From IMG/VR virus record IMGVR_UViG_3300027754_000034, positions 124,001 to 188,000 of that record: a DNA stretch of 64,000 bases; one strand, 5' to 3'. The position numbers were made by a program, and so were the translations under genes. Below are positions 8,067 through 54,174 of the stretch, one piece after another. The notes beneath the pieces were generated by a model, which saw only the letters and a list, made by a program, of their open reading frames with translations, made no database searches and was not told where the DNA came from. How positions within the stretch are numbered: the stretch's first letter is position 1; each line of letters opens with the position of its first letter.

Positions 8067-8528
8067 TCATGCTTCGTGGACTTTATTAATTAAACGAATC
8101 TTCCGGCATGCAGAAAGAAAAGAGCTTTTTGTCGTCTTCCACCACCAAGTCTTTTCTAAATAACCTTTACTCAGCATGACTTTTACCATCTCTTGATCGA
8201 GAGTATATGAATACATCTTAGATCTGTCGAATTCGTCTGGTATGATATTTAGTCCCTGTAGGATTACTTCATCCATGAAACCGGCACCGAACTTTTTAAT
8301 ACACTTATCGATATAACCAAGATGATTAACAATCACCCTCATTACTTTTTCCCTGGATGAACTCCCACTAGTAAGTTCCGCCAGGCGATCTGCGCCGATT
8401 TTATTTAGCACTTCGTTAATCTGTTGATGAATTGGTGATAAATAATCAATGCGAGATAAGAATGAAATTGCACAGGCTTCCCCTGCGCCCTTCATAAATT
8501 TGTCATTCCAATATCCACTATTTGCCAT
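8067..8528 (-). CDS. Hypothetical protein with shared C-terminal tag
   Basis: Ends RLINKVHEA*. Confidence 0.65.
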   Translation of the reverse strand: MANSGYWNDKFMKGAGEACAISFLSRIDYLSPIHQQINEVLNKIGADRLAELTSGSSSREKVMRVIVNHLGYIDKCIKKFGAGFMDEVILQGLNIIPDEFDRSKMYSYTLDQEMVKVMLSKGYLEKTWWWKTTKSSFLSACRKIRLINKVHEA

Positions 8529-8553
8529 GTTATTTGCCTTGTAAAGTAATGAT

Positions 8554-8748
8554 ATGAAGTTTATGGTCCGTTATGACTTGAATGGAAACGTGAAAGAAAA
8601 TATACTGGATATTCCTGCTAATAAATATTGGAGTTCACAGAAAATTTTAAGAGTAGCCTCGGAGTCTCTTCTGCAATTAGTGGGTCATCACACTCTTCTA
8701 AGAGTGAAATCACTCAATGAGTCGGATCCAGTTGCAGCTGAATTATGA
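8554..8748 (+). CDS. Small hypothetical protein, probably leaderless
   Basis: G-TAAAGT 6 nt before ATG. Confidence 0.45.
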   Translation: MKFMVRYDLNGNVKENILDIPANKYWSSQKILRVASESLLQLVGHHTLLRVKSLNESDPVAAEL

Positions 8749-9069
8749 TTCCATCACATCATGAATACTGAAGTAGTCGTTAATACTTGCGGCGTCTTGG
8801 GGATTCATCTGTGCCACTGACTTTGGGAATTTCCTAGCGAATGCTTGAATTTCCTCGATCTCTATCCTATACTCATTATATAATTTTGCTAGATTTATTA
8901 CCTCCTGCACTGAAAATTTATTAAGTATTCTCTTCCTACCACCCCACTTACCAGATGCAGAAAAAAATTCTGTAAAATTACTATGATTCTTTTTCGTTCT
9001 TTTCTCTGGTAATCCAGGAGAGAATGAATCGAAATCGTAGTTATGAAATATTATCTTTCGCTGTGACAT
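8743..9069 (-). CDS. Hypothetical protein with shared C-terminal tag
   Basis: Ends SIHDVMES*. Confidence 0.65.
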   Translation of the reverse strand: MSQRKIIFHNYDFDSFSPGLPEKRTKKNHSNFTEFFSASGKWGGRKRILNKFSVQEVINLAKLYNEYRIEIEEIQAFARKFPKSVAQMNPQDAASINDYFSIHDVMES

Positions 9070-9103
9070 GGGACGTATATCATGAAGATTCTGGTTACAT
9101 ATC

Positions 9104-9150
9104 CTGAGGATTCGGGTGGGTATTCATTTTAACCCCACCCGAATCCTCAG
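9104..9150. terminator. 17-bp stem hairpin after 9152..9967
   Basis: ctgaggattcgggtggg...cccacccgaatcctcag. Confidence 0.65.
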
Positions 9151-9151
9151 A

Positions 9152-9967
9152 TCAGCCACCGCTCATCCCACCAAACCACTCTGGGGTGATTTTGTGGGAC
9201 CCCTTCGGCGTCTTGATGTAGAGTCCATTGTAAAACTCCACCAAGAGCTGAGCCAAGAACAAACGGTGCTTCTTAGGTACGATAGTCGCCTTCTTCGGGT
9301 ATCTCGTCATATGAACACCATCTTGGCCCCTCAGACGGTTCCAGAAGGACCAGCTGAAATCGGCCTTCTTGATCCACATACCGTAGGACTCCGGGTTATC
9401 GGTAAGCTCGTAAAGCTCCACCGCCGAGATTGACTCTCGGAGAGCTGATGCCAGCTTCTCATATCCGAGTGCCCCTATGGCGTCGGTGCAAGCCGCATGC
9501 ACCGGGGTGCGACGATTGAGAGAAGCCGTACGGGTTAAGCCGTTGACGAGGCCACGATTCCCCTTCGGCTTATACTTCTTGACGAGGTAGTCTACAAGCT
9601 CGGGGTACTCAGCCAAAGCCATCATGGCCTCAACATCATCCTTGGGTTCCACTTCCTCCTTGTAACCCTTCTTGGAGCATATAGGGCCGATACCCCGCTC
9701 AACAGACTCCGAATCCGTGAGGGGTTGCCCACAATGGGCACATGAGGTGCAAATTCCCTCGAGCACTAGCTGGTAGCGGCTACCACCGCTGAAGTAGCTA
9801 CTCGCGACGGGGACCAGGACGGGTCCGGTCACGAGGGTCATCTGAGTCATGGGGGTAGCCTCTTCTGGCGTGGTGGTGGTGGTGCTTTCGATCGGAATTG
9901 TGTTCATGGGTACCTCATCATTAAACATTTCGTCCATCATATCAATAATGTTCTTCATTGCGCTCAT
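9152..9967 (-). CDS. DUF6011-like Zn-ribbon protein
   Basis: CAHCGQPLTDSESVERGIGPICSKK. Confidence 0.7.
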   Translation of the reverse strand: MSAMKNIIDMMDEMFNDEVPMNTIPIESTTTTTPEEATPMTQMTLVTGPVLVPVASSYFSGGSRYQLVLEGICTSCAHCGQPLTDSESVERGIGPICSKKGYKEEVEPKDDVEAMMALAEYPELVDYLVKKYKPKGNRGLVNGLTRTASLNRRTPVHAACTDAIGALGYEKLASALRESISAVELYELTDNPESYGMWIKKADFSWSFWNRLRGQDGVHMTRYPKKATIVPKKHRLFLAQLLVEFYNGLYIKTPKGSHKITPEWFGGMSGG

Positions 9968-10147: not shown

Positions 10148-10729
10148 TCAATCCACCATAACTTCTTGAACAACCGCTAATTTTAAAATTTCTTCAATTT
10201 CTTTAGGAGAAATTCCTACTGTAAGCGCTTCGTTGATCCAATTGGGAAGAGCTACTTCAGCTTTCTTCCTCCGAATTTGATTTTTATGGATTCGAATTTT
10301 GTTTTGATCCGACAGTAATTTGTCAATTTGACATGTGGTATTTTCTAATAAACACTCGATATGTTCCTTTGACTTAGGGTTTAGACTACCAACTTTCACA
10401 CTAAGTTCAGATACAACTTCATCTCTAACATCTCGCAAAGTTCGTTTTTCTGAATTGAATCCTTGTTTATTGAGTAATTCATATGTTTTAATCCACCAAT
10501 TAGCAAGACCAGAAATTTCAATTATGAAATTTCTGGTCGATGGTGGTGGAGAAGTACGATCACTTCGAGATGAATAGTAACCCGTTATTCTTTTCCCATT
10601 TTCAACTCGCGAGATCCTAGTCCCTATTTTATCGCCGTTACCAACGATTGTCGTGGACTTGAGAGTCATGGTCGGTATAGAATCAATAACATCCTGTATT
10701 TTCTTCTGAATAATCTGATGGTGAATCAT
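10148..10729 (-). CDS. Hypothetical protein with shared C-terminal tag
   Basis: Ends SPKEIEEILKLAVVQEVMVD*. Confidence 0.7.
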   Translation of the reverse strand: MIHHQIIQKKIQDVIDSIPTMTLKSTTIVGNGDKIGTRISRVENGKRITGYYSSRSDRTSPPPSTRNFIIEISGLANWWIKTYELLNKQGFNSEKRTLRDVRDEVVSELSVKVGSLNPKSKEHIECLLENTTCQIDKLLSDQNKIRIHKNQIRRKKAEVALPNWINEALTVGISPKEIEEILKLAVVQEVMVD

Positions 10730-13007: not shown

Positions 13008-13253
13008 ATGGATATGATGAGTGTAATCGCAAAACTAAATGGAGAAGGACAACTTATTTGGATAATAAAATCCAATGATTACTTAGTGATATATAATTGC
13101 GAATCCGGAAAAATAAGCGGAAATTGGAAAGAAGGAGTGTTTGCACCAATAGATGCCGTCATAGGTGCTCTGATTGAGTGGTATGAAATAGATAAAGTCA
13201 GTTATGGTGGAGAAAATATTAAGAAGGTTAAAGACTCACTTCATTCTATTTGA
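13008..13253 (+). CDS. Hypothetical protein
   Basis: ORF track. Confidence 0.4.
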   Translation: MDMMSVIAKLNGEGQLIWIIKSNDYLVIYNCESGKISGNWKEGVFAPIDAVIGALIEWYEIDKVSYGGENIKKVKDSLHSI

Positions 13254-13693
13254 ATGGATTCTATCTTAGTAAGCCTATATAAATCAATTATGTAGGCTTC
13301 TTCGAAGTCATGCTTTTTGAATACTTTTTTGAGGGAGTTAACCCCCTCAAAATCCATTTTCGCCGTGACTCTTTTTGCTTTTTTAAGAGACTTTCCGAAT
13401 TCTGAAAAATTTACGCAACTATTCTTTATTAAATCATTAAGTTTCACACTTTTACTGAGTCGTAGAACTTCTTCTTTACTATCTTTAATCCATAAAGTAG
13501 GATGATCTATCTTGATGCAATATTTAACTATATCGGATTGAGTGTTAGAGTTGTAAATAAAACTCTTTATATTTCCTTTATACTTTATTTGTACATTCTG
13601 AAATATTTTATCACTTTTAACAGTCCAAAAACTAGTAAGTATTAGGTTAGTTAATACTTCCTTTTCAAAATTCTCATATAATTTATGGGACAT
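13241..13693 (-). CDS. Hypothetical protein with shared C-terminal tag; paralog of 13717..14307
   Basis: Ends KHDFEEAYIIDLYRLTKIESIQIE*. Confidence 0.65.
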   Translation of the reverse strand: MSHKLYENFEKEVLTNLILTSFWTVKSDKIFQNVQIKYKGNIKSFIYNSNTQSDIVKYCIKIDHPTLWIKDSKEEVLRLSKSVKLNDLIKNSCVNFSEFGKSLKKAKRVTAKMDFEGVNSLKKVFKKHDFEEAYIIDLYRLTKIESIQIE

Positions 13694-13716: not shown

Positions 13717-14307
13717 TTATTCGTTCTGGATTTTATGGATTTGGCTTTCTCTTAAAAGGTTCAGTACTTGTTCTTCTTCAAAGTCATGACTTTCAAACAT
13801 CTTTCTGAGCCTCTTAATCTTCGTGGACTCAGCCATTTCAACTTTCTTGGTCTGAACCTTCTTGACTATGGCCTGTGCCGGTCCTTGTCCTATTGCTTGA
13901 TTGATGGCATGATCGATTTTGGCGATGAGGGTTGGGTTCACGTAATTTTTCTCCACTGTGTTCACATACTCCTCTGACCATCCGTTCTGTGTGGCAATCC
14001 AAGACAGGTCACCCTGCCTCCCGTAATAACAAATATACCCCATGATGTAAAGGGCCGCTCTCTCGGTATCGGGAAGAGAGAAGCCAAATCTTTGGATTTC
14101 ATTTCTGAGACGGTAAGCAGGAGGAGCAATTCGTTGCTCATATCCGATTTTAATTTCCTTGATTCTCACCCCAGAGAGAACTGGAAATTTCATTTTCACA
14201 GAGAGCTTCCTAATAATCTGGTATCCAGACGTCGTCCAATAAGCTGATAGCTGCAAATCATTGATGATTTCCTGCAGTTCTTTTTCTGTATACTGGTATT
14301 TATGCAT
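13717..14307 (-). CDS. Hypothetical protein with shared C-terminal tag
   Basis: Ends SHDFEEEQVLNLLRESQIHKIQNE*. Confidence 0.7.
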   Translation of the reverse strand: MHKYQYTEKELQEIINDLQLSAYWTTSGYQIIRKLSVKMKFPVLSGVRIKEIKIGYEQRIAPPAYRLRNEIQRFGFSLPDTERAALYIMGYICYYGRQGDLSWIATQNGWSEEYVNTVEKNYVNPTLIAKIDHAINQAIGQGPAQAIVKKVQTKKVEMAESTKIKRLRKMFESHDFEEEQVLNLLRESQIHKIQNE

Positions 14308-16874: not shown

Positions 16875-17687
16875 CTAATTCAGGTGTACGTCCGCGATTT
16901 GCAGCCTTCTCAACAAATCACTAAAATCAACACAGTGCCCTTCCATAAAGCTGCCCGCTGACAGTTCAGCCAGTAATTCTTTTTCCACAAGCTCTTTCCA
17001 ATGAGGGCTCGGATATTCGTGTTCCGAAACCGCCTTGACTAGCAGTTCGGTCCAATCGGAGAAAGTAGCAATTCCATGTTTATTTCTTTCGAAATGTTCA
17101 TCTCTTTTGAAGATCATGTGGATTCGTTCTTCAAAAGAGATAACCACTTTCGTCTTCTTGCGAACCAAATCCCCAAGATCTTTCAGGATCGCCCCGGTCA
17201 GGATCGCCCCGGTCAGATTCGCCCCGGTCAGGTCCGCCCCGCTCAGGTTTGCCCCGCGTAGATTTGTCAGCATCAGGTTCGCGTTGGTCAGGATCGCCCC
17301 GGTCAGGTTCGCGTTGACCATATACGCCCCGCTCAGGTCCGCCCCGCTCATGTCCGCATTGGTCAGGTCCGCCCCCCGCAGGGCCGCATGGTTCAGGGAC
17401 GCATGGCTCAGATTCGCCATACTCAAGTCCGCACTATTCAGGTTCGCCCCGAACAGGTTCGCCAAACTCAGGTTCGCCCCGAACAGGTTCGCCAAACTCA
17501 GGTCCGCATCAGTCAACATTGCCCCAGTCAGGTTCGCACCACATAAGTTCATCCCGCTCAGGTTCGCATCGGTCAGGTACGCATTGCGCAGGTCCGCCTT
17601 GGCCAGGTCCGCCTGCTTTTCCCCCTCCTGACGGCTGAGCCGGATGGCGTGTTGCACTAAAACTGCTTCGAGTTCTGCCTTTTTCAT
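16875..17687 (-). CDS. Pentapeptide-repeat protein with C-terminal domain and shared tag
   Basis: A(D/N)LxG repeats; ends RLQIADVHLN*. Confidence 0.9.
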   Translation of the reverse strand: MKKAELEAVLVQHAIRLSRQEGEKQADLAKADLRNAYLTDANLSGMNLCGANLTGAMLTDADLSLANLFGANLSLANLFGANLNSADLSMANLSHASLNHAALRGADLTNADMSGADLSGAYMVNANLTGAILTNANLMLTNLRGANLSGADLTGANLTGAILTGAILKDLGDLVRKKTKVVISFEERIHMIFKRDEHFERNKHGIATFSDWTELLVKAVSEHEYPSPHWKELVEKELLAELSAGSFMEGHCVDFSDLLRRLQIADVHLN

Positions 17688-17859: not shown

Positions 17860-19341
17860 TTACTGCCGGGTAGGATTGAGCTGAACTACCCGACCGAAGT
17901 TCGGCTTAAAATGCCGCTTATTCGTGATAATCCACAGGCAATCCGCTCCCCTCGGCATCAGATTAATCGGGACTTCACCACAATCTCCATCGGTCAGAAT
18001 GATCACTAGATCAATCTTGTCACCAAATTTCTGCTTCGGCAGATCCTGGAAGAACTCGGTAAATACCGTGCCTCCACGACCCACCACCTGCGTACGCTCC
18101 AAAGAAGTCTTGCCGCTAACCCGAGTCGCTTTATCCCAATAGGGGACCGCATCACATGGCACGATCCAACCTTCAGCGACATCCGCCACCAATTGAAGCT
18201 CCTTCACCCCGTTCGCAATATCGTCATCCGACATTGACCCGGAGGTGTCCATCAAACAAACCCACCTAGGGAGGAAGTCGTGCTTCTTGGGTGTGTAGAG
18301 CTGATGCTTTGGGACGAATTTCCCATTCTCGTCCTTCGAGTAGATGTAGCTCGGACGACGGCGGAATCGCTTCCAGTCATTAATGTTTCCGGCATTCGCC
18401 TTCTTCTGTGCAATAGCCATTCGGATGATATCTCGTGCCGAGAGTTCTGGCTTCTTGAGTCGACCCAATGCCTGTTCGATACCCTCCGGTACCTCTCCAC
18501 GACCCATGGCACGGGTCTGGTCAGCAGCCCTCATCATATCCCCAAAGGTCTCCTCCTTGGTTTGGGAGGGAGGCATATGAGAATCGAGAGACCCCGGTCC
18601 ATCACAACAACCGGGCTTAGCCCCGCACTTCTGGCAACATTCTGGTCCCCAGGGCTGCGGGATTGTGCTCTGACCAGTCTTCGGGTCAAGAGACATGGCA
18701 CCGCAACCTCCTGCGTGCTCCTTGCAACGACGAGGGGAGTTCATTTGAGCCTTGCGGATCTGCTCGTAGATGGACTCCGGGCTTCGCCCGTAGACCGTGA
18801 CGTCTGCAAAGCATCCGGGTTGGGGGAGGTCATCCCGCGTTCCACCAATCCACTCCAAGTACATTTGGAGCGAAATCGGAGTTCCGAGCGGACCTGTCCA
18901 GATCTTCGGGAATTTCTGGTTCCGACCGGACTTCTCGTGCTCGGTCTCGATCGTGGCGTTCACCACGTAATCGACCGAGATGTTCCAGCATTGTCCGTCC
19001 AGACCACCGGCCCGTTCGGGGGAACAGTGGAAGAAGAGTACATGGTAGCTCTCGTGAGACATGACGGTCGTCACCTCTTCGGGAGACAGGGATTCCAGGA
19101 ACTCGGGGTTCCAATAGTATTCCTTACCGTTCGTGGCTGCTGTCTTGATTTCTTGTCCCCCGAGCTGCTTCGCCAGCTTATGGGGTTTAGGACCACTGAG
19201 GGCGAACAGGAAGGGATTTCCCCCTCCTGACGGCTGCCGGAACATCCTGGTTAAACATGAATTGATTTTATCCTGACAGTCCTGCAACTGTCGGGGGCTT
19301 GAGGCCACATTGTACGGATCAGCCAGTCGTGTGTATTGCAT
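17860..19341 (-). CDS. DUF2201-type metallopeptidase-VWA protein (MoxR partner)
   Basis: TAATNG, HESYH (HExxH), DYVVN, MIDAS DTSGS, GRGGT, ILTDG. Confidence 0.88.
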   Translation of the reverse strand: MQYTRLADPYNVASSPRQLQDCQDKINSCLTRMFRQPSGGGNPFLFALSGPKPHKLAKQLGGQEIKTAATNGKEYYWNPEFLESLSPEEVTTVMSHESYHVLFFHCSPERAGGLDGQCWNISVDYVVNATIETEHEKSGRNQKFPKIWTGPLGTPISLQMYLEWIGGTRDDLPQPGCFADVTVYGRSPESIYEQIRKAQMNSPRRCKEHAGGCGAMSLDPKTGQSTIPQPWGPECCQKCGAKPGCCDGPGSLDSHMPPSQTKEETFGDMMRAADQTRAMGRGEVPEGIEQALGRLKKPELSARDIIRMAIAQKKANAGNINDWKRFRRRPSYIYSKDENGKFVPKHQLYTPKKHDFLPRWVCLMDTSGSMSDDDIANGVKELQLVADVAEGWIVPCDAVPYWDKATRVSGKTSLERTQVVGRGGTVFTEFFQDLPKQKFGDKIDLVIILTDGDCGEVPINLMPRGADCLWIITNKRHFKPNFGRVVQLNPTRQ

Positions 19342-20192: not shown

Positions 20193-20929
20193 CTATTGTA
20201 GCACCGAAGAGAACGAAATTGGGAGATAAAGGCCCAGACGTCATAAGTTGGCAAAAATACTTAGTGAGTGCTGGTTTTAACCCCGGAACTCCCGATGGTA
20301 TTCATGGGAAGAAAACAGAAGACGCAGGTTTAGCCTGGGAAAAAGCGTCAACTGCTTCCACAATTCCGCCCGAATCTACTCTTTTTAGTCAGCACATTCA
20401 GTCTCGTAATTTCACGAAAGCTAACCGTAAGAAGGTAGACTTGGTGGTTCTCCATAGCACAGAAAACCCGATAAAGGCCGGAGTCGCGAAGAGCGTCGCT
20501 TTGTGGTTCAGCGGCGAGTCTTCACCTCGTGCGTCCGCTCATTACATCGTCGGCCCCGACGCCACGTTCCGGTGCGTCCGGGAGGACGACGTGGCGTACG
20601 CCGCACCAGGAGCGAACAACAACGGCGTGCAGATAGAGCAAGTCGGGCAAGCTTTTAAAACTCAGTGGCTCAAAGACGGGACTGGAGTCACCGATGGTTA
20701 CCAGGTTTTTAAAAATTCAGCTAAACTCGTCCATGATATTTGCCTTCGTTGGGACATTCCGATGGAGAAAGTGGATGCTATAGGTTTATTAGCCAAAAAA
20801 CGCGGCATTACCACTCACGCAGCAGTCAGCGAGGCATTTAAAAAATCAGATCATGTGGACCCAGGTTGCAAAGGCGATATTCGTTGGCCTTGGGCAGAAT
20901 ATCTTGACCTAGTAAATCAATCGTCCTGA
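20189..20929 (+). CDS. Endolysin: PG-binding domain plus N-acetylmuramoyl-L-alanine amidase (Amidase_2)
   Basis: VVLHSTE, ASAHYIV, AYAAPGAN..GVQIE, ITTH, HVDPG..WPW. Confidence 0.9.
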   Translation: MTIVAPKRTKLGDKGPDVISWQKYLVSAGFNPGTPDGIHGKKTEDAGLAWEKASTASTIPPESTLFSQHIQSRNFTKANRKKVDLVVLHSTENPIKAGVAKSVALWFSGESSPRASAHYIVGPDATFRCVREDDVAYAAPGANNNGVQIEQVGQAFKTQWLKDGTGVTDGYQVFKNSAKLVHDICLRWDIPMEKVDAIGLLAKKRGITTHAAVSEAFKKSDHVDPGCKGDIRWPWAEYLDLVNQSS

Positions 20930-21345
20930 ATACTGCTTATTGTCTTTAACTTGGCTTTGATGGATTTTATCTCCTTTAAATTTTCAGTCCACCAAGTACA
21001 AGTTTTCAGTCGTCTTCCCAAATCACGAGCGATTCTCGGCTTACTATATAACTCAAAATCACCGACACCCACCACGTTATAGCAGAATTCACCGAATCCA
21101 TGGCTCTTTGTGAATTCGGTGAATTCTGCTTCTAAATTCCCGTACTCGAGTAAGATAATCCCCAAGTGTTCATCGTGAAATGATCCAGCCAATAGCCCTA
21201 AAGGAATTTTTCGACATATTAAATCCAGATTATCCAAAATCCCGGATTCTTTATACCAATATCCCACCATGGTGACTACCAAGGTTTCCAAGTCAATTTT
21301 AATGGTAATGAAATTACGATTACTTATCATGATATTACCTCGCAC
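20917..21345 (-). CDS. Hypothetical protein with shared C-terminal tag
   Basis: Ends KLKTISSIQDD*. Confidence 0.55.
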   Translation of the reverse strand: MRGNIMISNRNFITIKIDLETLVVTMVGYWYKESGILDNLDLICRKIPLGLLAGSFHDEHLGIILLEYGNLEAEFTEFTKSHGFGEFCYNVVGVGDFELYSKPRIARDLGRRLKTCTWWTENLKEIKSIKAKLKTISSIQDD

Positions 21346-21492: not shown

Positions 21493-22593
21493 TCATTTCA
21501 AGACCTTCCGGACGGCCAGGTAGGTGGCCATTACGGATGGGATCTTCTGCATGCTGAAAGACTTTATCAAGTCCATGTTCAGCGCGGATTTCACCGCCGC
21601 GACCTGGAATTCAGTGGGGATTTCCTGCAACCAATTGAAGACATTGGTAGCTACCTTGTCGACGGATGCCTGGTGTTTCGTCTTATCCTTGAAGTCCGTT
21701 CGACGGCACTCCTGGGCAACGGCAGACACGGAGCCGATCGCGCAGACCAATTGCTTATCAATCGTCATCGTGTCCATGTTCGGCTTGGTCCCATCTGCCA
21801 CCAGCTTGTCGATGATAGGCTCGACGTGGCGGTAGTGGTCCAGCCAAACCCGGAACTTTACCGCAGCCTCACTCCCGACCCGGCCTGCAACCAGCATGGT
21901 CTGGAACTCGACCGAATCTTTGGACGTCGTCTGGTCCACTTCCCGAGCCGCCAGGCTCCAGGAGCGGGGAGACGGCCTGCAATAGGCAGTGGGGTCACCC
22001 TCAACCGAAGGACGGCTGAGGAATTCCTGATTCTTGCTCAGGAATCCGACCACAAGCGGATTTAGACCCGCGTCCTGTGCCCATTGCCTCCATGGTTCAA
22101 AGCTGTGTGTCAGCTTATACACCTTGCAACGGTTAGTCAGCGCGTGCGACACGGGCTGGCTGTGTGCCCCCTCGTCGGGTAGATTACCCGTTGCGATGAT
22201 GGCTTGAATCGAAAGCTTCGTCCCATTGAGGGTATGGGACTGGAACAACTCCAGGAGAGGATTCTGAAGCTCAGGCTTCGACTTGTCAACCTCATCCACG
22301 AGGAGGACCACCGGTCGATCCACCCTACCCTCAATGGGTAGGAAACGGGGTCGAGCATAGTCCACGCTCTGGTCCTCGGTGATGATGGGGAGACCGAGCA
22401 AATCCGGTGCTTCAAGCACCGACAAGTTCAGGTAGTACACCCCAAACCCCTCTGCCTCAGCGGCTTGGACCGCCATTTCGGTCTTGCCGATCCCCGCCTG
22501 ACCGAAAACCATGAGGTTTCCACCCGTTCGGACATTGAAGCGTAGAACCTCGGCGTAGGTATCCTGGGTGATTTCGACAACATTGGTGAGCAT
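21493..22593 (-). CDS. MoxR-like AAA+ ATPase
   Basis: Walker A GQAGIGKT, DLLGLP, Walker B LLVDEVD, ATGN, ALTNR, PSPRSW. Confidence 0.92.
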   Translation of the reverse strand: MLTNVVEITQDTYAEVLRFNVRTGGNLMVFGQAGIGKTEMAVQAAEAEGFGVYYLNLSVLEAPDLLGLPIITEDQSVDYARPRFLPIEGRVDRPVVLLVDEVDKSKPELQNPLLELFQSHTLNGTKLSIQAIIATGNLPDEGAHSQPVSHALTNRCKVYKLTHSFEPWRQWAQDAGLNPLVVGFLSKNQEFLSRPSVEGDPTAYCRPSPRSWSLAAREVDQTTSKDSVEFQTMLVAGRVGSEAAVKFRVWLDHYRHVEPIIDKLVADGTKPNMDTMTIDKQLVCAIGSVSAVAQECRRTDFKDKTKHQASVDKVATNVFNWLQEIPTEFQVAAVKSALNMDLIKSFSMQKIPSVMATYLAVRKVLK

Positions 22594-22757: not shown

Positions 22758-23414
22758 TCAATCTTTCATAATTTCATGCATAACATAGGAGTCAAGTGCC
22801 CTTTTGAGCACTTCTGGTGAAGCATCTTTGGCCCATCTGTCCAAACACTCCACAATTTTCTCTACGACGTGATCTTCCCGGGCTTTTCGGAGGCCACTCT
22901 TGTACTCATCCCCCGATTGGTCTTCGGCAACCAGGAGACAAATCTTTTTAGAAGCTTCTTGAAATTCGGTCTCCAGGTTATAAAACTCTTGGTGAATATC
23001 TTCCCACATCATCTGCAATAGCCTATCCGGCTTGCAGAAATAAGTAGGAACCCGAGGCTTCCTCTCTCCCTCCCGAATGACGCCGAAATTATCTAGAATG
23101 ATCTTCTCCAGATCCTTCTTGTGGAAGACCATACTGAAGTTCGTTCGGCACTCGAATTGAAATTCGCCCCCAGAAATCTTGTTATGGTGGAAGCCGGAAA
23201 TGACATTTTCCTCGTTCTCTCCAAATCCAACTACAAGTATTGGGTATGACACCCCACTATAATCGACTTGGAAATCCCATTTTACGATGGACGGCGTTGC
23301 AAGTCTCCTTTTTGCAATGGCTATATAATTTTTAAAATCTTCAGTCTCCTGAATGAGACTTGAAACCTTCTTATAACTTTCACCACTCTTCAGCTTTCGC
23401 GGATTACGGGACAT
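22758..23414 (-). CDS. Hypothetical protein with shared C-terminal tag (start revised to MSRNPRK)
   Basis: AAGGAG RBS after promoter motif; ends SPEVLKRALDSYVMHEIMKD*. Confidence 0.7.
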   Translation of the reverse strand: MSRNPRKLKSGESYKKVSSLIQETEDFKNYIAIAKRRLATPSIVKWDFQVDYSGVSYPILVVGFGENEENVISGFHHNKISGGEFQFECRTNFSMVFHKKDLEKIILDNFGVIREGERKPRVPTYFCKPDRLLQMMWEDIHQEFYNLETEFQEASKKICLLVAEDQSGDEYKSGLRKAREDHVVEKIVECLDRWAKDASPEVLKRALDSYVMHEIMKD

Positions 23415-23435
23415 CGTGTTCTCCTTCACCCGGCG

Positions 23436-23460
23436 AGACGCAGCGACGCGGGCAATTGTC
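23436..23460 (-). promoter_or_regulatory. ECF-like promoter motif
   Basis: agacg-cagcgacgcgggcaa-ttgtc. Confidence 0.72.
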
Positions 23461-23490
23461 AGTATTTCGTTTCGATGCATTTACTACTAT

Positions 23491-25590: not shown

Positions 25591-26166
25591 TCACGAATTC
25601 ATGACTCGCTCAGAAATGATAAGGTTCATAGCTGAAGCGAAAACTTCGTCATTAAGTTCAGACTTAGATAATATCATCTTTTTAAACTTCGTCCACCAAA
25701 AAATAGCATCCCCGAAACGGCTATTGGAAATATTATATTCCATCCAACCATTAAAATCCCTTACGGTGTGAATCTCAGGATATTCAAGAGACACGTATGA
25801 AGATGGATATTTAAGAGATCTCAGATTATTCTCTTGAATTAACTTGTCAAGCTCTTGAAGACGACTAAAGATCATCTTCGTCAGAACACTGTTAGGGACC
25901 GGTGCCTTCTTTTTCGGCTCCCACTCCTCAATCAATTTCTTGGTTGCCTCGAAGTCCATCCTAAAAAATAAAATACAATTTGGTATTGTCACCATGGTGA
26001 CATCTTCCAAGGTCAGGAAGTTCTGCTCTTGCAGAACTCTGATGTGAGACAAGTTCCCGCCTTGGAGGATGGAATTGGCCAACTTTCGAAGCTGACCCAT
26101 ACCTCCAAAGATGGAATCTGCTTTGGTTTGCGCAATACTATCGAGTTTATAATCGTGGTAAAACAT
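25591..26166 (-). CDS. Hypothetical protein with shared C-terminal tag
   Basis: GGAG RBS; ends NLIISERVMNS*. Confidence 0.7.
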   Translation of the reverse strand: MFYHDYKLDSIAQTKADSIFGGMGQLRKLANSILQGGNLSHIRVLQEQNFLTLEDVTMVTIPNCILFFRMDFEATKKLIEEWEPKKKAPVPNSVLTKMIFSRLQELDKLIQENNLRSLKYPSSYVSLEYPEIHTVRDFNGWMEYNISNSRFGDAIFWWTKFKKMILSKSELNDEVFASAMNLIISERVMNS

Positions 26167-26226: not shown

Positions 26227-26251
26227 GGACGCAGCGGCAGCGGCAGCTGTC
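26227..26251 (-). promoter_or_regulatory. ECF-like promoter motif (GACAG-N15-CGTCC)
   Basis: ggacg-cagcggcagcggcag-ctgtc. Confidence 0.7.
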
Positions 26252-26504
26252 ACTCACTCATTGTAAGTTCAATTATTGAAAGACGTATAGCATCTTCTTG
26301 AAGTTCATACAATCTGGAGGATCTTGCACGAGGCCACAATTTCTGCCCTCCAATCGTTAAAATCCAGTATGAAGTTTGAAAATCAATACATTCCGATATG
26401 CAAAATTCTTCTCCTCTAAATTTAAAAGTAGTGTGTGAATGAATTTTAAGACGGTTTATGGCGTTTCGTATTACAAGAGAAAAAGCACTCGGGATTTTCT
26501 TCAT
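26250..26504 (-). CDS. Hypothetical protein with tag-like C-terminus
   Basis: Ends RLSIIELTMSE*. Confidence 0.5.
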   Translation of the reverse strand: MKKIPSAFSLVIRNAINRLKIHSHTTFKFRGEEFCISECIDFQTSYWILTIGGQKLWPRARSSRLYELQEDAIRLSIIELTMSE

Positions 26505-28816: not shown

Positions 28817-29269
28817 CTAACTGCTCATGATGTCAGATAACACTTGCGATCCACAATTTAAGTCAACACTGCTCTCTTCGCAAGCCTCAACCAGAGTTTG
28901 ATCTCGGCGTACGTTCACCCATTTAAGACATCTTCGGCACCTAAATTGGTATGCTTCATCAGAATAGATAGATTCTCTTGCAGATGCCCAATCATGGTTA
29001 TTAAAATTTCCTTTTGCCGGGTTGTACTTCTTTCTCTTCTCTAAACTTACATCAACACCTTCGGATTCAAGCAGAGAATCAAGCATGAAGGAAAATTGGT
29101 CTTTTTCAACCGTATCTTCCTCAGGGTCTACCGGCTTTTCAGCGTCGTATTCATCTTCTGCAATTTCTGATTGTACTTGTACATGAGTACCCTGATTAAG
29201 AATCAGATCTTCTTTCTTGGCTTCCGGTTTGCTAATGCCGAATAGATCATCCATTTCTTTGCTAAACAT
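28817..29269 (-). CDS. Acidic Zn-finger protein with shared C-terminal tag
   Basis: HDW...CRRC...C; ends QVLSDIMSS*. Confidence 0.65.
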   Translation of the reverse strand: MFSKEMDDLFGISKPEAKKEDLILNQGTHVQVQSEIAEDEYDAEKPVDPEEDTVEKDQFSFMLDSLLESEGVDVSLEKRKKYNPAKGNFNNHDWASARESIYSDEAYQFRCRRCLKWVNVRRDQTLVEACEESSVDLNCGSQVLSDIMSS

Positions 29270-29584: not shown

Positions 29585-29884
29585 TTACTGTTTCTTTTTA
29601 TAAGGCAAAGGCGCCTCACCATTCCGAGCTAATTTACATACTTCTTCGTGCCCCAATCGGGCAGAATCCTCATCTTTATATTTAACCGTAAGTAACTCCG
29701 TTTTATTACTTACGGTTACGAATTCATGAACTTCTAAAATGCTCTCCATCCGTGGATTTTCATAATTATTAAAGAAAACCATAGTCTCGTAAGGATAACT
29801 AAGATTAATAGATAATGATGGAAGGAAATTCGTAGAAACGAGATAAAATACCCCGTTGCATAAAATGTCATCTTTCAGGTTCAT
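29585..29884 (-). CDS. Hypothetical protein, paralog of 33364..33735
   Basis: YPYETMVF...KY..E..A..GH. Confidence 0.6.
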   Translation of the reverse strand: MNLKDDILCNGVFYLVSTNFLPSLSINLSYPYETMVFFNNYENPRMESILEVHEFVTVSNKTELLTVKYKDEDSARLGHEEVCKLARNGEAPLPYKKKQ

Positions 29885-30327
29885 GATTCCATCACATTCT
29901 CGATCACCAGTTCATCCGTCGCTTCTTGAAAGGCTGCGAACCAAACTTCACGTGAAACCTTAGAAGTCCACTTACTTTTCATGATATCCTTGAATTTGGT
30001 TTTGATCCGTTCGACCATCACGTCTTCTAGATATAATTTGGCTTCGGTTTCCTGAATAGTGGTGACCGATGCAGGCACAATCCAGAGCCTCCATACCGAC
30101 CCTTCACCATGATTTTTGCCCGGGTCCCAATTATGCGGTTCTGACATTCCTTTGTTGCAGTCGGAACAGAACCCGTAAACTTTGCGAGACATTAGCCATG
30201 GTGAGGTATTGACACCCGAAGAATACGTGACTCTATAAAAATGTCTTGATTTTTTACGACAAAAATCAATTTCCGGGGTGCCATTTTGTCTTTTCGTTCC
30301 GCGATCAACATTCTTAAAACAGCGCAT
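29881..30327 (-). CDS. Hypothetical Cys-rich protein with shared C-terminal tag
   Basis: AGGAG RBS; ends DELVIENVMES*. Confidence 0.7.
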   Translation of the reverse strand: MRCFKNVDRGTKRQNGTPEIDFCRKKSRHFYRVTYSSGVNTSPWLMSRKVYGFCSDCNKGMSEPHNWDPGKNHGEGSVWRLWIVPASVTTIQETEAKLYLEDVMVERIKTKFKDIMKSKWTSKVSREVWFAAFQEATDELVIENVMES

Positions 30328-36624: not shown

Positions 36625-36690
36625 TGTATTTGATACAATATATCAGCATGCCGTGTCAAATATGTGCTATATATTTGACACGGCATTCGG

Positions 36691-38904: not shown

Positions 38905-39112
38905 CAGGAGGACGCAGCGCCCGGTGCAGCTGTCGCTGCGACCGGATCACCGCTCCCTCACACAAGGAGGACGCAGCGCCCGGTGCAGCTGTCGCTGCGA
39001 CCGGATCACCGCTCCCTCACACAAGGAGGACGCAGCGCCCGGGGCAGCTGTCGCTGCGACCGGATCACCCCGTCTCCCTCACAAGGAGGACGCAGCGCCC
39101 GGGGCAGCTGTC
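38905..39112 (-). repeat. Four tandem 59-60 bp repeats, each carrying the promoter motif
   Basis: aggaggacgcagcgcccgg[t/g]gcagctgtc with ggacg at 38910, 38969, 39028, 39088. Confidence 0.9.

Positions 39113-42179: not shown

Positions 42180-42185
<6 letters not shown>
40497..42185 (+). CDS. dnaE: Minimal C-family DNA polymerase (DnaE alpha-like, lacking PHP domain)
   Basis: [49 protein letters not shown]. Confidence 0.88.
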
Positions 42186-43986
<1,801 letters not shown>

Positions 43987-44005
43987 TAATGACCTATAGT
44001 CCGTA

Positions 44006-44896
<891 letters not shown>

Positions 44897-48782: not shown

Positions 48783-49115
48783 ATGATTTTAGAAATGAGA
48801 TGTGAAAAATGCAGAGTATCTGATTATTGTCCTTCGAAGGGTTCGTCTCCTGGCGTCCTTAAAAATGGAAAGCATGCGTTATGTAGATTAGTAGGGGGAT
48901 ATGGACGAAAAACTCTTCCTGAAAAAATCCTTTCTAAGGAATCGAAAGAATTGTCAGCAAACGGTAGGAATTGTCTAACAATAGCTGAAATTCCCATTAT
49001 TTTAGGAAATGATGTATTTTACAAAATAGAAAAGATATTCTCGCCCCCAGTTTTACATGAGAGAGAATCTCTCTCATGGCATCAGAAAATGTTAATGCCT
49101 AAAAGAAAATCATAA
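48783..49115 (+). CDS. Cys-rich hypothetical protein
   Basis: CEKC...CP...C. Confidence 0.5.
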   Translation: MILEMRCEKCRVSDYCPSKGSSPGVLKNGKHALCRLVGGYGRKTLPEKILSKESKELSANGRNCLTIAEIPIILGNDVFYKIEKIFSPPVLHERESLSWHQKMLMPKRKS

Positions 49116-50423
49116 ATGATCACCTATTTCGTCTGGGGAGATCGCGTTGCACCACTGCATTAATTCAGGAAATTTATTATTTACTTCTTCAAACATTTTA
49201 AATGCTATTCTTCTATATGAAATATGACCTTGAGGCTTAGTTCTCAATTCAGTGATATAATATAACTCCGCTAGGTCCATCTTAAATATACTACGATGTA
49301 AATAACCCATGGGAATGATGTACTGGTATATGTCATTGTCATGAATTACTGTGTCTTCTTCGTAATTCAATAACTGATCCATAACGTTCCTATATTTTTC
49401 CTCCAGGGGTGTGTTAACAAAGTCATCCGGCACTGAGTACCCATAGTATGTAGTTAAAGGTTCAGGAAATTGTTCACACCTTCGATGTCTTTGTAAGTCT
49501 CTATATGCCCCATAATCCATTATTATCTCTAATGTGAAATCTACTAATCTAAATATTTCAACAGTTCTTCTATTTCCTCTTTTATTCATCAGTGTATTCA
49601 ATTCCCCCCATTCCATACCATATATGCTCTTTGCATATTTCTTCATTTTCTCGAAGGACTTAAGGTCGCAATTTAGTATCTTTACTGATTCTTTATCTTT
49701 TACAAAATAATCTGGTATGATCGCCTTCAACCTTGGTTCAAAATTATCTGGTTCAATTCCCCCCAATAATGAAGGACATAATTCCGAAGCACATTTTAAA
49801 ACCTCTGCACCTATGGTTCGTATCTCCGGATTTTTATGCCCTAAAGCCTCCGATATCAAATATCTTAAATCCCTAAGATTTATTACGCAAGCCAAGTTGG
49901 TTCCTGTTCCAGCTGGTAATAAGTATCTAAGACTATCAAAAGCCCTGGCTTTTACTCTATTTTCATTAATGTCTTGAGTTCCAATGAGGCATGCTGCTCT
50001 ATCTAGAGCAGCATGATGCATTTCATCATACGCTTCATAATATCTTTTAGCAAAGTTCGTAAGTGTTGTATTACCAGGTAAGGGATTAATAAAACTATCC
50101 TTACTAAAATATTGATATCTGGTACTTTTCTCTGAATAGCCTGCTCTTTGATATTTTTCTATGAATTTAGATGCAATTATACTAATTCCTTCAAAGCAAA
50201 TAGGGATTACAGCTAGCTCTGCAACACTAGAATGACCATAACTTATAGTCCATTTAGAATGGAATTTATTCGCTTCTTCGTTAGTTAACGTGTTTATTAT
50301 ATCCTTTGCAGATAAGGACGACCTAGAATACTTAGCAAGAGTAGTGGCTTGAATGGAAGGAGGTAATAAATTTCCATCCTTAGATTTAAGAACATATATA
50401 TCCATAAAGAATCCTACATTCAT
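49110..50423 (-). CDS. thyX: FAD-dependent thymidylate synthase, tandem-domain type
   Basis: YGHSSVAE, SEKSTRY, RYLLP, RDLQRHR, ELRT..QGH..YR. Confidence 0.9.
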   Translation of the reverse strand: MNVGFFMDIYVLKSKDGNLLPPSIQATTLAKYSRSSLSAKDIINTLTNEEANKFHSKWTISYGHSSVAELAVIPICFEGISIIASKFIEKYQRAGYSEKSTRYQYFSKDSFINPLPGNTTLTNFAKRYYEAYDEMHHAALDRAACLIGTQDINENRVKARAFDSLRYLLPAGTGTNLACVINLRDLRYLISEALGHKNPEIRTIGAEVLKCASELCPSLLGGIEPDNFEPRLKAIIPDYFVKDKESVKILNCDLKSFEKMKKYAKSIYGMEWGELNTLMNKRGNRRTVEIFRLVDFTLEIIMDYGAYRDLQRHRRCEQFPEPLTTYYGYSVPDDFVNTPLEEKYRNVMDQLLNYEEDTVIHDNDIYQYIIPMGYLHRSIFKMDLAELYYITELRTKPQGHISYRRIAFKMFEEVNNKFPELMQWCNAISPDEIGDHL

Positions 50424-51261: not shown

Positions 51262-52296
51262 TTACTTTTTATATAACCTATTCACATTATTCAAGGCCCA
51301 TTCTTCCAATTCTGATTTTCCTAGTCTTTTTGCCGACCACCTAATTATATCATAGGGTCCTTCATGTAAGGCTGCTGGATGTCGAAAACCTATTCTATAT
51401 ACCGATGTTCCAAGTCCACTATCTAGTCCCATATTAATCGCTTGTCTCGACCAGATTATTGCTTTATCAAACATGTTGAGATGATAACTACAAAATCCTG
51501 CCAACCAATACAACTCCGCGATGCCAGGATGTCTACCTATCCCTCTCGCACATGATTCCAAAGCTTTCTGATATTCATTTTTCTTAATAAAGCAACCAGC
51601 CATTTTGAACATACTCCAAGCAGATTCTTCATCCCAGCCGTTCAAATTATGGCAAGATTCATAAGCTAGTATGGCGTCATCTAATTTATTTAAATTATTG
51701 TAAGTGTCTCCTAAATAATAAAACCACCTCGGATCTTTCGCATTTTCCTTTGTATGCTTTTCTAAAATTTCGGCATCTCTCTTTAGTTTGTGCTGCATCT
51801 GTTCAGCAGTCTTACGTAACTCACTAAAATTAGCATTAGGGGCATTGTGGCACCCCACAGAATGTGCAGGGTAAACCTCATGGGTAGGACCATAAAAAGC
51901 ACTGGATATAGGCAACCGAAAACATCGTGCTTTATAATATGTCTTCCCAACATCCATTATGGATATGCAGTTTTCTTTTGTAAGAGACATTAGTTTTCTT
52001 AAGTCATCGTTATTCTGGTGAATTCTTTCGTCCGTATCTAGAATTATCGCCCAATCACCACCGTGGTTATGCGCCGACAATAGTGTGAAATTCCGAGCAG
52101 CTGCAAAGTCATTGATCCATGGGAAAGATTCTATTATGAGTCTTTCTCCACATACATCTTTAGCTACTTCTAAAGTTTGGTCTGTAATGCCTGTATCAAC
52201 CACCAAGAATTTATCGACTATATCATATACGCTTTTTAAGGCATCTGATATTATACTCTGATTATTTCCAGATAGAGTTACACTTATGACCTTCAT
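51262..52296 (-). CDS. GT2 glycosyltransferase with TPR repeats
   Basis: VVDTG.TD.T, W.NDFAAARN, LDTDE, HE, DPRW.YYLG. Confidence 0.9.
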   Translation of the reverse strand: MKVISVTLSGNNQSIISDALKSVYDIVDKFLVVDTGITDQTLEVAKDVCGERLIIESFPWINDFAAARNFTLLSAHNHGGDWAIILDTDERIHQNNDDLRKLMSLTKENCISIMDVGKTYYKARCFRLPISSAFYGPTHEVYPAHSVGCHNAPNANFSELRKTAEQMQHKLKRDAEILEKHTKENAKDPRWFYYLGDTYNNLNKLDDAILAYESCHNLNGWDEESAWSMFKMAGCFIKKNEYQKALESCARGIGRHPGIAELYWLAGFCSYHLNMFDKAIIWSRQAINMGLDSGLGTSVYRIGFRHPAALHEGPYDIIRWSAKRLGKSELEEWALNNVNRLYKK

Positions 52297-52349
52297 AACT
52301 AAGTTATTTTACTAATTGAGTTGTCGCATCATTACTTTATTTATGGTAT

Positions 52350-52766
52350 GTGAAAATCATGGGAATTTTTAGCAAGTTAAAACATAAAATAGCCGTAACC
52401 AAAAGCAATAGAAGAGAAAAAAGAAAAGAAAAACTCCGTTCCCCTAAGTGGTCTTCTACCAGGGATTCATTTTTAAAAAGTCACAATACTTGCTCTGTGT
52501 GTATGGGAACCAGTAATCTACAAGTACACCACATAAAACCATTCCATAAATATCCCGAACTAGAATTAGACTCTGAAAATCTTATTACATTATGTATGGG
52601 CGACAAGGATTGCCACTTAGGAATAGGTCATGGAGGATCCTTTGATTTTTATAATCCAAAGGTTCGAGAAGATGTAAAACTGCTTACGGAAAAATTGTCT
52701 TTATTTGATAAATTGAAAACAGAAATAAAGCAAAGAAGATTTTCTAATACTAATAAATCCCTCTAA
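52350..52766 (+). CDS. HNH endonuclease
   Basis: CSVC...LQVHHIKP...NLITLC....CH...H. Confidence 0.88.
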   Translation: MKIMGIFSKLKHKIAVTKSNRREKRKEKLRSPKWSSTRDSFLKSHNTCSVCMGTSNLQVHHIKPFHKYPELELDSENLITLCMGDKDCHLGIGHGGSFDFYNPKVREDVKLLTEKLSLFDKLKTEIKQRRFSNTNKSL

Positions 52767-53047
52767 TCTCCAATAACGATATCCAAAGACAATAAATTTA
52801 GAGAATATGTGAGTTGCATTTGCGCCACTACGTGGAGGCCATTACTTGGTGTTTCCATGACCTCCCGTATTGATTTTATGTCTTCAGATTCTTGAGCCAG
52901 CTCACATTTATCTAAACTATAACTCTCAATTAATCCTTGCTTACATAATGATTCTAAAAGAATATTAATTTTAACCCGATGAGTTTCTAACGATTTATCT
53001 GTAATTATATAATTAGATATCGTATCACGAATCATTTGCTCTATCAT
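52763..53047 (-). CDS. Hypothetical protein
   Basis: Leaderless-type box; internal tag-like IREVMET. Confidence 0.45.
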   Translation of the reverse strand: MIEQMIRDTISNYIITDKSLETHRVKINILLESLCKQGLIESYSLDKCELAQESEDIKSIREVMETPSNGLHVVAQMQLTYSLNLLSLDIVIGD

Positions 53048-53135
53048 AAATGAAGTTACACAAAGAATTTCATTTACACCGGATTTGAATTTGTCATATA
53101 CCCTAGTAGTTCCCCGAGCATATGTTCAGGTGAAA

Positions 53136-53185
53136 CGACGCCGTGATCGATCGAGTGTATTCGGGCTCGAACGATCACGGCGTCG
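53136..53185. other. GC-rich hairpin in AT-rich intergenic DNA
   Basis: cgacgccgtgatcg...cgatcacggcgtcg perfect 14-bp arms plus inner tcgag/ctcga. Confidence 0.7.
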
Positions 53186-53280
53186 AACGTGAATCCCATT
53201 CTTTTAACATTGGCTTTAAACCTTGATTAAGGCTGCGGAGTCTCACCACGGTTTTTATCTTTTAATGTATACTTCATAGT

Positions 53281-54174
53281 ATGAACCCCGTAAATGCATC
53301 TAATATGATGAAGAGAATGGCTGCCGCGTTAGCGGCATCCAAGTCTCCCAATAAATCTGCCGTAGCAAAAGATCTTATGGCATTATCTGACGCCATAAAC
53401 GGAAATAGAAAAGCTGAGGCTTATTTAACAAATAAATTGGCGGGAGGAAGGACTCACAAAGGAAACATACCACCCCTCCCCATGCAAGGGGAGCGTTTGG
53501 ATTTTTCTGGTATGATCCCTTTAGATAAGGATTTTCATGGGAAGGACCTGTCCGTACTGAACTTCATCGATGAGGATTTACGCAGGGCGCAATTACAAAA
53601 CGCGAAACTTAACGGGAGGGACCTGTCCGGGGCGGACCTGTCCGGGGCGGACCTGACCGGGGCGGACCTGAGCGGTGCGAAACTTAACGAGGCAACCATG
53701 AAAGGGGCGAACCTCACCGGGGCGGACCTGACCGGGGCGGTCCTGACCAACGTAAACCTGTCCGTGGCGAAACTGACCGAGGCGAACCTGTCCGGGGCGA
53801 ACCTGTCCGGGGCGAACCTGTCCGGGGCGAACCTCACCGGGGCGAACCTGTCCGGGGCGAATCTGGACGAGGCATTTCTGATTGATAAGCGGCACCCCGC
53901 ACCCACAGTAAGAGCTGAAGGACACCCAGAAATAGAATTGTTCATCCAAGAAAATCTCAGCAGAAATTATGGAGTTCATACTCTCAATGACTGGTCTGAT
54001 CTCTTGACTGATGCGGTATATGAGGCGTCCGGTGCCTACCATGGTAGTAATTTGAAAGAGCGTGTAAAAGAGGAGCTGATAAAGGAACTATTAGCGGGCA
54101 ATTTTATGAGAGGCATTATAGACTTCAGTGATATTCTGAAAAGACTTCAAATTTCGGATGTAATGATGGCATAA
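53281..54174 (+). CDS. Mosaic pentapeptide-repeat protein (N-module of 24897, C-domain and tag of 16875)
   Basis: KRMAAAL..SK.P N-terminus; ends DFSDILKRLQISDVMMA*. Confidence 0.88.
   Translation: MNPVNASNMMKRMAAALAASKSPNKSAVAKDLMALSDAINGNRKAEAYLTNKLAGGRTHKGNIPPLPMQGERLDFSGMIPLDKDFHGKDLSVLNFIDEDLRRAQLQNAKLNGRDLSGADLSGADLTGADLSGAKLNEATMKGANLTGADLTGAVLTNVNLSVAKLTEANLSGANLSGANLSGANLTGANLSGANLDEAFLIDKRHPAPTVRAEGHPEIELFIQENLSRNYGVHTLNDWSDLLTDAVYEASGAYHGSNLKERVKEELIKELLAGNFMRGIIDFSDILKRLQISDVMMA

Follow-up and report, generated by a model that had tools for sequence, protein, structure and literature searches.

We found a short peptide tag at the C-terminal ends of many small proteins encoded in a window of 64,000 nucleotides. 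The window covers positions 124001-188000 of a contig of 257,205 bp (IMGVR_UViG_3300027754_000034 = Ga0209596_1000003) that belongs to an uncultured phage and comes from a freshwater metagenome. The tag consists of a hydrophobic residue at −7, Val or Ile at −4 and Met, His or Gln at −3, where −1 is the last residue before the stop codon. The motif and its register, selection on it at the protein level, its modularity across folds and its restriction to one clade of huge phages were established. We propose that the tag is a carboxylate-anchored recognition motif that marks the clients of one common reader, and we give this reading a probability of about 0.6. Recognition by one reader is the best explanation for one exact C-terminal distance that is kept in about 100 clusters of proteins, on several folds and over a wide GC range.

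A C-terminal tag in the window

The original prediction had listed 13 open reading frames (ORFs) of the window as carriers of the tag, and all of them were recovered at the same positions with the same last seven residues. On the minus strand they were 8067..8528 (153 aa, INKVHEA), 8743..9069 (108 aa, IHDVMES), 10148..10729 (193 aa, VQEVMVD), 13241..13693 (150 aa, IESIQIE), 13717..14307 (196 aa, IHKIQNE), 16875..17687 (270 aa, IADVHLN), 20917..21345 (ISSIQDD, with a likely start at the ATG at 21330), 22758..23480 (MHEIMKD, likely 218 aa from the ATG at 23414), 25591..26166 (191 aa, SERVMNS), 26250..26504 (84 aa, IELTMSE), 28817..29269 (150 aa, LSDIMSS) and 29881..30327 (148 aa, IENVMES). The plus strand held 53281..54174 (297 aa, ISDVMMA). 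Each carrier is called below by its first coordinate.

The prediction turned on the motif being more frequent at C-termini than at internal positions, and it was far commoner there. Among the 116 greedy non-overlapping ORFs of the window, 11 ended in [ILVM]xx[VI][MHQ]xx-stop, compared with 0.27 expected from the internal frequency of the pattern. When Thr was permitted at −4, the count was 12 against 0.38 expected. SERVMNS (25591) had no hydrophobic residue at −7. Since the strict pattern was chosen post hoc, two further tests that did not depend on it were performed. Composition was compared position by position over the last 15 residues, where Ile at −7 (18 vs 6.0 expected, p 2e-5) and Met at −3 (9 vs 2.3 expected, p 5e-4) were in excess, and Val at −4 and Gln at −3 also stood out. 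Anchored C-terminal 8-mers were then compared after removal of paralogues detectable by BLAST. Their similarity was 13.6, compared with 8.2 ± 0.7 for random internal 8-mers from the same proteins, and none of 300 controls reached it.

The carriers had been called mostly unrelated. This was true of their folds, which differed, but several carriers were paralogues and most belonged to orthologous families common to related phages. The pairs 13241/13717 and 16875/53281 were paralogous within the window, so the 13 were not all independent. Close beyond the window edge, at L003:18198-18614, lay a 14th member that ended in INTIKKVMKD and linked two further carriers: 20917 was its full-length paralogue, and 8067 had in common with it a 30-residue end of the form WWxK...tag. 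It was the only extra tagged member in about 40 kb of the same genome beyond the window, which placed the tagged genes mainly in one region, where most genes are small and lie on the same strand. It had also been claimed that recognisable enzymes lack the tag, and this held in the window. A RecD-like helicase just downstream, which ends in NAVMIS, was a near-miss.

A larger shared C-terminal domain was considered and rejected. Leave-one-out hidden Markov models (HMMs) of the last 24 residues failed on the left-out members, and similarity between families stopped at −7. This meant that the common part was short and was defined by its distance to the end.

Conservation of the tag across a clade of huge phages

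Relatives were reached by an exhaustive HMMER search with the DUF2201 protein of the window (40-62% identity). Further loci were collected with the DUF2201 alignment from IMG/VR and JGI metagenomes, on contigs of up to 190-410 kb; a profile search of genome contigs with the same alignment found nothing. The related loci were syntenic with the window in ligase, AAA+, DUF2201 and DUF6011 genes. The same contig was present in three other samples in copies at least 99.96% identical, and these near-identical strain contigs held no sequence diversity usable for comparison. Cultured phages offered none close: megablast with window positions 8000-31000 gave zero matches, and tblastn with the DUF2201 protein gave identities of at most 23%.

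A look at related phages had been proposed along with the prediction, and the tag was found there on many small ORFs of the clade loci. The fixed register was confirmed at the same time. Among about 20 clade loci with GC contents of 41-68%, [VILM]-x-x-[VI]-[MHQ] was followed by exactly two residues in 196 ORFs, and by 0, 1, 3 and 4 residues in 4, 1, 3 and 6 ORFs, respectively. Loci whose DUF2201 protein was at least 44% identical carried 2-28 tagged ORFs each, compared with 0.05-0.6 at shifted registers, while those with identity of 41% or less carried 0-2. Eight outgroup loci showed 5 tagged ORFs in 515, which was background, though they had the neighbouring AAA+ and DUF2201 genes in common with the clade. 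The motif is restricted to one clade of huge phages, and this clade occurs in many freshwater and sediment metagenomes.

The loci differed in density and in the residue at −3. In L010 (21.5 kb, GC 64%), 26 of the 45 pipeline-called genes ended in V/I/L-x-x-V-M-x-S/T/A/E. His was preferred at −3 in L012 (GC 47%; VHNS, VHDS, VHEA), and the window and its closest relatives showed a mixture of M, H and Q. The tagged ORFs were short and diverse. Their median length was 128 aa among 189 with less than 60% mutual identity from 20 loci, with many of 55-95 aa, and BLAST clustering of 160 from eight loci gave 104 clusters, 78 of which were singletons.

Nine of the 13 window carriers had relatives in other clade loci, and the tag was mostly kept. 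We counted 7-26 relatives each for 22758, 29881, 28817, 25591, 8743, 10148 and 20917, and one for 8067. The tag of 8743 was kept by orthologues in many related phages, and that of 25591 in its 7 orthologues. The family of 10148 comprised 11 related ORFs, whereas 28817 and 29881 had 10 and 14 orthologues, respectively, and 22758 belonged to a clade-wide family beside the AAA+ gene. The ninth, 26250, resembled by eye the T-M variant of the 10148 family; Thr at −4 occurred in relatives too. No match was obtained by jackhmmer for 13717 or 26250, and BLAST gave no tagged relative of the pentapeptide pair 16875/53281 outside the window. In the 22758 orthologues at L060:5825-6505 and L034:4449-5129, the end ...HAIMES was kept and was followed by 16 more residues, so that the tag lies internally; this reflects either loss of the stop codon or an assembly error. 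Two extra in-frame copies of the motif, LEDVMVE and FKDIMKS, were also observed inside 29881, 27-49 residues before its end.

Selection at the protein level

With families weighted equally, the consensus was V/I/L-x-(E)-V/I-M/H/Q-(E)-S/T/A-COOH. Positions that had not been used for selection were still biased: −7 was V/I/L in 77%, −5 was E in 25% and −2 was E in 32%. The last residue was S in 46%, T in 11% and A in 9% (S/T/A 66%). Similarity between families was confined to the last seven residues, and within families −4, −3, −7 and −9 were among the best-conserved of the last 30. Tagged orthologues were 22-41% identical, compared with 44-72% for DUF2201 and 47-78% for AAA+.

At the nucleotide level, the tag was variable. 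All four Val codons and three Ile codons were used at −4, ATG alternated with CAY and CAR at −3, and the information within the tag lay at first and second codon positions. The stop codon overlapped the next start as ATGA in 57 of 189 tagged genes. Ser at −1 was equally frequent with or without this overlap, and all six Ser codons were used where it was absent. The DNA downstream of the stops showed no conservation. A DNA-level repeat at the gene ends was rejected, given that nothing was conserved past the stops and codons turned over inside the tag. The use of all synonymous Val, Ile and Ser codons, together with the lack of conservation downstream, indicates that selection acts on the protein and not on the DNA.

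Composition and structure of the carriers

The carriers had few recognisable domains. In profile scans, 10 window carriers had no Pfam family below E 0.001 and none matched PHROGs, and a Pfam scan of 98 clade carriers gave a single match, to ankyrin repeats. In a word-indexed search of 5.8 billion proteins, 22758 and the C-terminal domain of 53281 each matched nothing but themselves, and Atlas look-ups with 20917 and 10148 gave nothing above noise. The folds that could be assigned comprised a pentapeptide β-helix, ankyrin repeats, Cys-rich mini-proteins and an α/β family. In 16875 and 53281, the pentapeptide repeats occupied the N-terminal part only and were followed by a helical domain ending in the tag. 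Half of the small carriers were Cys-rich with a conserved Cys near −14, as in 28817. A transmembrane-like segment was found in 1.6% of tagged and 12% of untagged proteins, which indicated that the carriers were soluble. The carriers are fast-evolving, soluble, mostly small proteins and appear to be non-enzymatic accessory proteins.

The original prediction had also described a helix-(S-P/R-E)-helix module capped by the tag. Such a module was seen in several families as an S/T/N-P-x-E N-cap at about −20, for example S-P-x-E at −20 in 10148. The last 18 residues contained 0.08 Pro+Gly in window carriers and 1.8 in untagged proteins, and the tag terminated a Pro/Gly-free stretch of about 17-20 residues. 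The AlphaFold2 model of the 22758 family, built from 18 homologues, had a mean predicted local distance difference test score (pLDDT) of 86.6. It showed an α/β N-terminal part, a long helical hairpin and a terminal helix, with helix 169-193, a loop, and helix 200-216 containing the tag (pLDDT 82-94). Foldseek found no fold relative of this model in the PDB (best E 1.5). The model of 53281 had a helical end domain with pLDDT 73-88, and its last five residues were below 50. Amphipathicity of the tag found no support in the hydrophobic moment, which was not raised.

Candidate readers

The AAA+ ATPase and the HExxH/VWA protein were encoded mid-cluster among the tagged genes in every clade locus. 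The divergent AAA+ ATPase (21493..22593, minus strand) is untagged and has weak AAA_5, AAA_2 and ClpA-D2 similarity; its closest solved relative was ClpA D2 (E 5e-4). It was linked to DUF2201 in every related locus. The DUF2201 protein (17860..19341, minus strand), also untagged, is a marker of the clade. It has a metallopeptidase-like N-terminal domain with HExxH and a VWA-like domain with a DxSxS motif, and both HExxH and the VWA metal-site motif were kept. These two proteins are candidate readers. They correspond to the MoxR/VWA pair that had been named as one possible partner. The pair sits among tagged genes but also in tagless outgroups, and no significant covariation with the M-versus-H preference was detected.

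A further candidate was a family 2 glycosyltransferase (GT2) fused to TPR repeats, encoded at 51262-52296 on the minus strand, with similarity to SunS-like peptide glycosyltransferases. TPR domains are classical readers of C-terminal peptides. A pattern-based search for GT2-TPR as a clade-wide reader detected it only in the two nearest relatives. In addition, a Kelch-repeat β-propeller protein of 637 aa, another possible reader, is encoded about 17-19 kb upstream of the window (L007:6824-8737). Eukaryotic Kelch propellers recognise C-terminal degrons.

Proposed mechanism and alternative explanations

The reading of the tag as a docking or sorting signal was thus upheld in part. It is a real signal of the protein, tied to the C-terminus, present on different folds, absent from recognisable enzymes and conserved in the clade; its proposed partners are candidates. 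In the mechanism that we propose, the putative reader would grip the free α-carboxylate and the side chains of residues −3, −4 and −7, and the receptors for PTS1, EEVD, HbYX or ssrA tails provide a model for such a grip. A reader that holds the carboxylate would explain the invariant distance to the stop codon. A single reader may serve all carriers. For the fate of the clients, our preferred outcome is, tentatively, hand-over to the phage AAA+ ATPase and the DUF2201 VWA/metallopeptidase pair for timed remodelling or removal. Loading into the virion seems improbable and sorting into a phage-made compartment quite improbable, and what probability remains falls to docking on a host hub or to recognition by a modifying enzyme such as GT2-TPR or the Kelch-repeat protein. 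We also consider it possible, though rather unlikely, that this clade of phages has its own sorting system, in which a dedicated phage receptor would recognise a genome-encoded C-terminal 'zip code', V-M-x-S-COOH, and bring dozens of effector-like proteins to one destination. This destination might be a phage-built compartment, the virion for co-injection, or a dedicated unfoldase or protease that clears the proteins on schedule.

Several observations weigh against a common reader or its preferred identity. The AAA+/DUF2201 pair is present in outgroup phages that lack the tag, which means that the pair is not sufficient. Covariation between the M-versus-H preference at −3 and the alignment columns of AAA+ and DUF2201 was not significant (p about 0.1 and 0.2). 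The 22758 tag is helical in the model, whereas the degrons of unfoldases mostly lack structure. The position of the tag in a well-predicted helix would suit a packed element of the structure no less than a free tail. The hydrophobic moment of the last 14 residues was not elevated (0.24, compared with 0.29 in untagged proteins and 0.26 at internal positions). Finally, the leave-one-out profiles suggest that there is no larger shared domain to bear a binding surface.

One alternative is an intrinsic structural or assembly element that has no common reader, such as a helix cap, a packing face or a homo- or hetero-oligomerisation helix that arose by old duplications and was reused. We regard this as unlikely. 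It is consistent with the confident terminal helix that contains the 22758 tag after a long helical hairpin, with the absence of Pro and Gly from the last 18 residues and the recurrent N-cap at about −20, and with the paralogy of several window members. The outgroup homologues of 22758 also end in similar helices that are off register (YDVLED, STMDID). But the end of a helix does not need exactly two residues past M/H/Q in about 100 clusters and several folds, and similarity between families stops at −7. The last five residues of the pentapeptide model had pLDDT below 50. Moreover, M, H and Q could not replace one another at −3 in packing, whereas one pocket could fit all three.

The remaining alternatives place the origin of the motif in the nucleotide sequence or in its history. 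If the 3' gene ends served the following, often overlapping, gene as a ribosome-binding site or as a context for termination and re-initiation, the peptide would be a by-product, and E-V-M can indeed spell GAGGTGATG. The ATGA overlaps in 57 of the 189 tagged genes agree with this, as does the use of GTG at −4, which in the GC-rich relatives exceeds its share among the Val codons of long ORFs (15 of 31 vs about 25% in one example). The codon diversity at −4, the replacement of ATG by CAY or CAR at −3 and the behaviour of Ser at −1 argue against it, and there was no common nucleotide string among the window codons. The tag was also kept before gaps of 50-200 nt and before convergent genes, and the hydrophobic −7 and the helix context are features of a peptide. 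This explanation is very improbable. We give an equally slight chance to a functionless relic of common ancestry or module shuffling, in which a short 3' cassette was spread by recombination. Tagged genes are clustered in one plastic region, jackhmmer from 8743 links families of unlike length through their last 30-40 residues or so, and 29881 carries three tandem copies, all of which would fit a relic. But the tag was kept over GC contents of 41-68% with synonymous turnover while the rest of the protein was only 22-41% identical, and such retention requires purifying selection. No DNA-level repeat was found at the gene ends. Recognition by one common reader thus remains the explanation that we prefer.

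Comparison with known C-terminal and loading signals

Apart from the microcompartment peptide, for which the comparison was mixed, the tag lacks the defining sequence features of the known signals with which it was compared and is a member of none of them. We would place it among C-terminal recognition motifs, in a setting without prior description. No description of such a motif in phages was found in the searchable literature, and to our knowledge no viral counterpart of PTS1/Pex5 or ssrA/ClpXP has been reported from a bacteriophage.

PTS1, which is [SAC]-[KRH]-[LM]-COOH and is read by the TPR domain of Pex5, is similar: it too is very short, keeps a constant distance to the free carboxylate and addresses numerous unrelated soluble proteins to a single receptor. 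In contrast, the tag ends in a small polar residue and has its key positions at −3, −4 and −7, and PTS1 is eukaryotic and based on an organelle. The PTS1 tripeptide was absent from the family-weighted logo, with S 46%, T 11% and A 9% at −1, E 32% at −2 and M/H/Q at −3. Degrons of AAA+ proteases (ssrA ...LAA-COOH, ClpX C-motif 1, FtsH and Tsp tails) also combine the α-carboxylate with the last residues and have small ends, and the tagged genes surround genes for an AAA+ ATPase and an HExxH protein. However, the tag is not LAA-like, is encoded in the genome on native proteins and looks helical rather than unstructured. Its consensus V-[MHQ]-x-[STA] and its Pro/Gly-free tail, helical in the 22758 model, do not have the sequence features of ssrA or ClpX C-motif 1. 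Unlike Clp systems, the phage AAA+ is only weakly Clp-like (E 5e-4) and is present also where the tag is absent.

EEVD (Hsp70/Hsp90 with TPR co-chaperones), HbYX (proteasomal ATPases) and MIM helices (ESCRT-III with Vps4 MIT) resemble the tag in that a tail docks onto one machine, and for EEVD and HbYX the register to the terminus matters. The tag differs in having neither a penultimate Tyr nor EEVD, and the known motifs occur on few paralogues, not on half of a region's genes. For HbYX in particular, Tyr was outside the six commonest residues at −2. PDZ-binding motifs of classes I-III, which end in a hydrophobic residue and have class-specific residues at −2, did not correspond either, as the last residue was S/T/A/E/D in most carriers.

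Shell-loading signals (T4 capsid targeting, encapsulin and microcompartment peptides) are likewise short peptides on unrelated cargo, and phages use the principle. However, the T4 capsid targeting sequence is N-terminal and is cleaved by the prohead protease, while the tag is C-terminal. GSL-rich encapsulin peptides and microcompartment helices have no fixed register to the terminus, and the tagged genes lie amid replication and nucleotide-metabolism genes, not structural genes. The encapsulin cargo-loading peptide (~G-S-L-x-I-G-S-L-K) was not recognised, and Gly occurred in the last 18 residues of only one window carrier. Compared with the microcompartment encapsulation peptide, an amphipathic helix of about 18 residues with a flexible linker, a helical tail is likely for the tag, with the moment of 0.24 not raised. 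The roughly 100 kb that were read showed no shell genes. Effectors of Dot/Icm type IV secretion resemble the tagged proteins in being numerous and fast-evolving and in including ankyrin and pentapeptide proteins, and their C-terminal signals show Glu enrichment, small polar residues and hydrophobic residues near −3/−4. In contrast to the tag, these signals are compositional, have no fixed register and belong to bacterial secretion systems.

Genes of huge phages are mostly ORFans, and a seven-residue label groups up to half of a region's genes into one functional class. The motif is a simple sequence signature for clade members and accessory proteins in metagenomes, and it gives a direct experimental handle on the reader and on the fate of its clients. 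If the reader were a sorting receptor or a tag-specific protease, phage cell biology would gain a new principle, and the motif could serve as a small, portable label with which to direct proteins in infected cells.

Other features of the window

The window encodes a DNA ligase, the DUF2201 protein, the divergent AAA+ ATPase, GT2, a TilS-like PP-loop domain, a DnaE fragment, collagen-like proteins, ThyX, a Mom-like protein, a PurZ-like synthetase and PurB, plus six tRNAs. The GC content was strongly mosaic over positions 1-64000: it reached 63% around PurB (2-4 kb), fell to 34-36% between 44 and 52 kb and was 40-50% elsewhere, which suggests recent acquisitions from different sources. A gene set at 56493-57710 (−), 1933-3291 (−), 54992-56515 (+) and 49110-50423 (−) includes PurB, the Mom-like domain protein and ThyX. 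The adenylosuccinate-synthetase-like protein scored best with the PurZ model (E 3e-56), under the curated cut-off. Together, the PurZ-like protein, PurB, the Mom-like protein and ThyX hint at 2-aminoadenine or another DNA base modification.

Two neighbouring plus-strand genes at 19467-20929 have a common 50-residue segment that is 82% identical, and the one at 19467-20192 gave a marginal Pfam match to a peptidoglycan-binding domain (E 1.7e-4, below cut-off). There were two collagen-like repeat proteins and another protein, made up of 15-nt tandem repeats, that has a Lys/Ala-rich tail (42180-44896 (−); 4455-5216 (−)).

A stand-alone N-terminal domain of TilS (tRNA lysidine synthetase, PP-loop) at 30349-31044 (−) adjoins the tRNA cluster, and the phage may modify tRNA anticodons with it. 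ARAGORN called a 75-nt 'tRNA-SeC' with anticodon UCA at 29497-29571 (−), among the tagged genes, and a tRNA-Ser with the unusual anticodon ACU at 36689-36775 (−). Because 75 nt is too short for a true selenocysteine tRNA, the tRNA(UCA) is probably an opal suppressor. A connection between this tRNA and the tag was considered and no link was shown. TGA was the commonest stop in the window, and the stop usage of tagged genes was ordinary (42 of 79 stops in ORFs of at least 80 aa vs 8 of 13 tagged).

A bipartite motif, GACAG(T/C)..-N8-CGCTGCGTC(T/C), occurred in 16 copies on the minus strand only, compared with 0.04 expected. The copies lay within window positions 10020-39112, for example at 10020, 11458, 15578, 19386, 22654, 23436, 26227, 28080, 31426, 31847, 33268 and 34017, and four tandem copies with 59-nt spacing were found in a gene-poor stretch at 38910-39112. 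They were located 5-130 nt upstream of minus-strand genes and also upstream of a tRNA-Leu/Gly pair. An RNA hairpin was rejected for this intergenic repeat, which had no consensus structure. Without a conserved RNA fold, the motif is probably a phage promoter or operator. A gene for an RpoD-like sigma factor is present in the same phage, some 19 kb upstream of the window.

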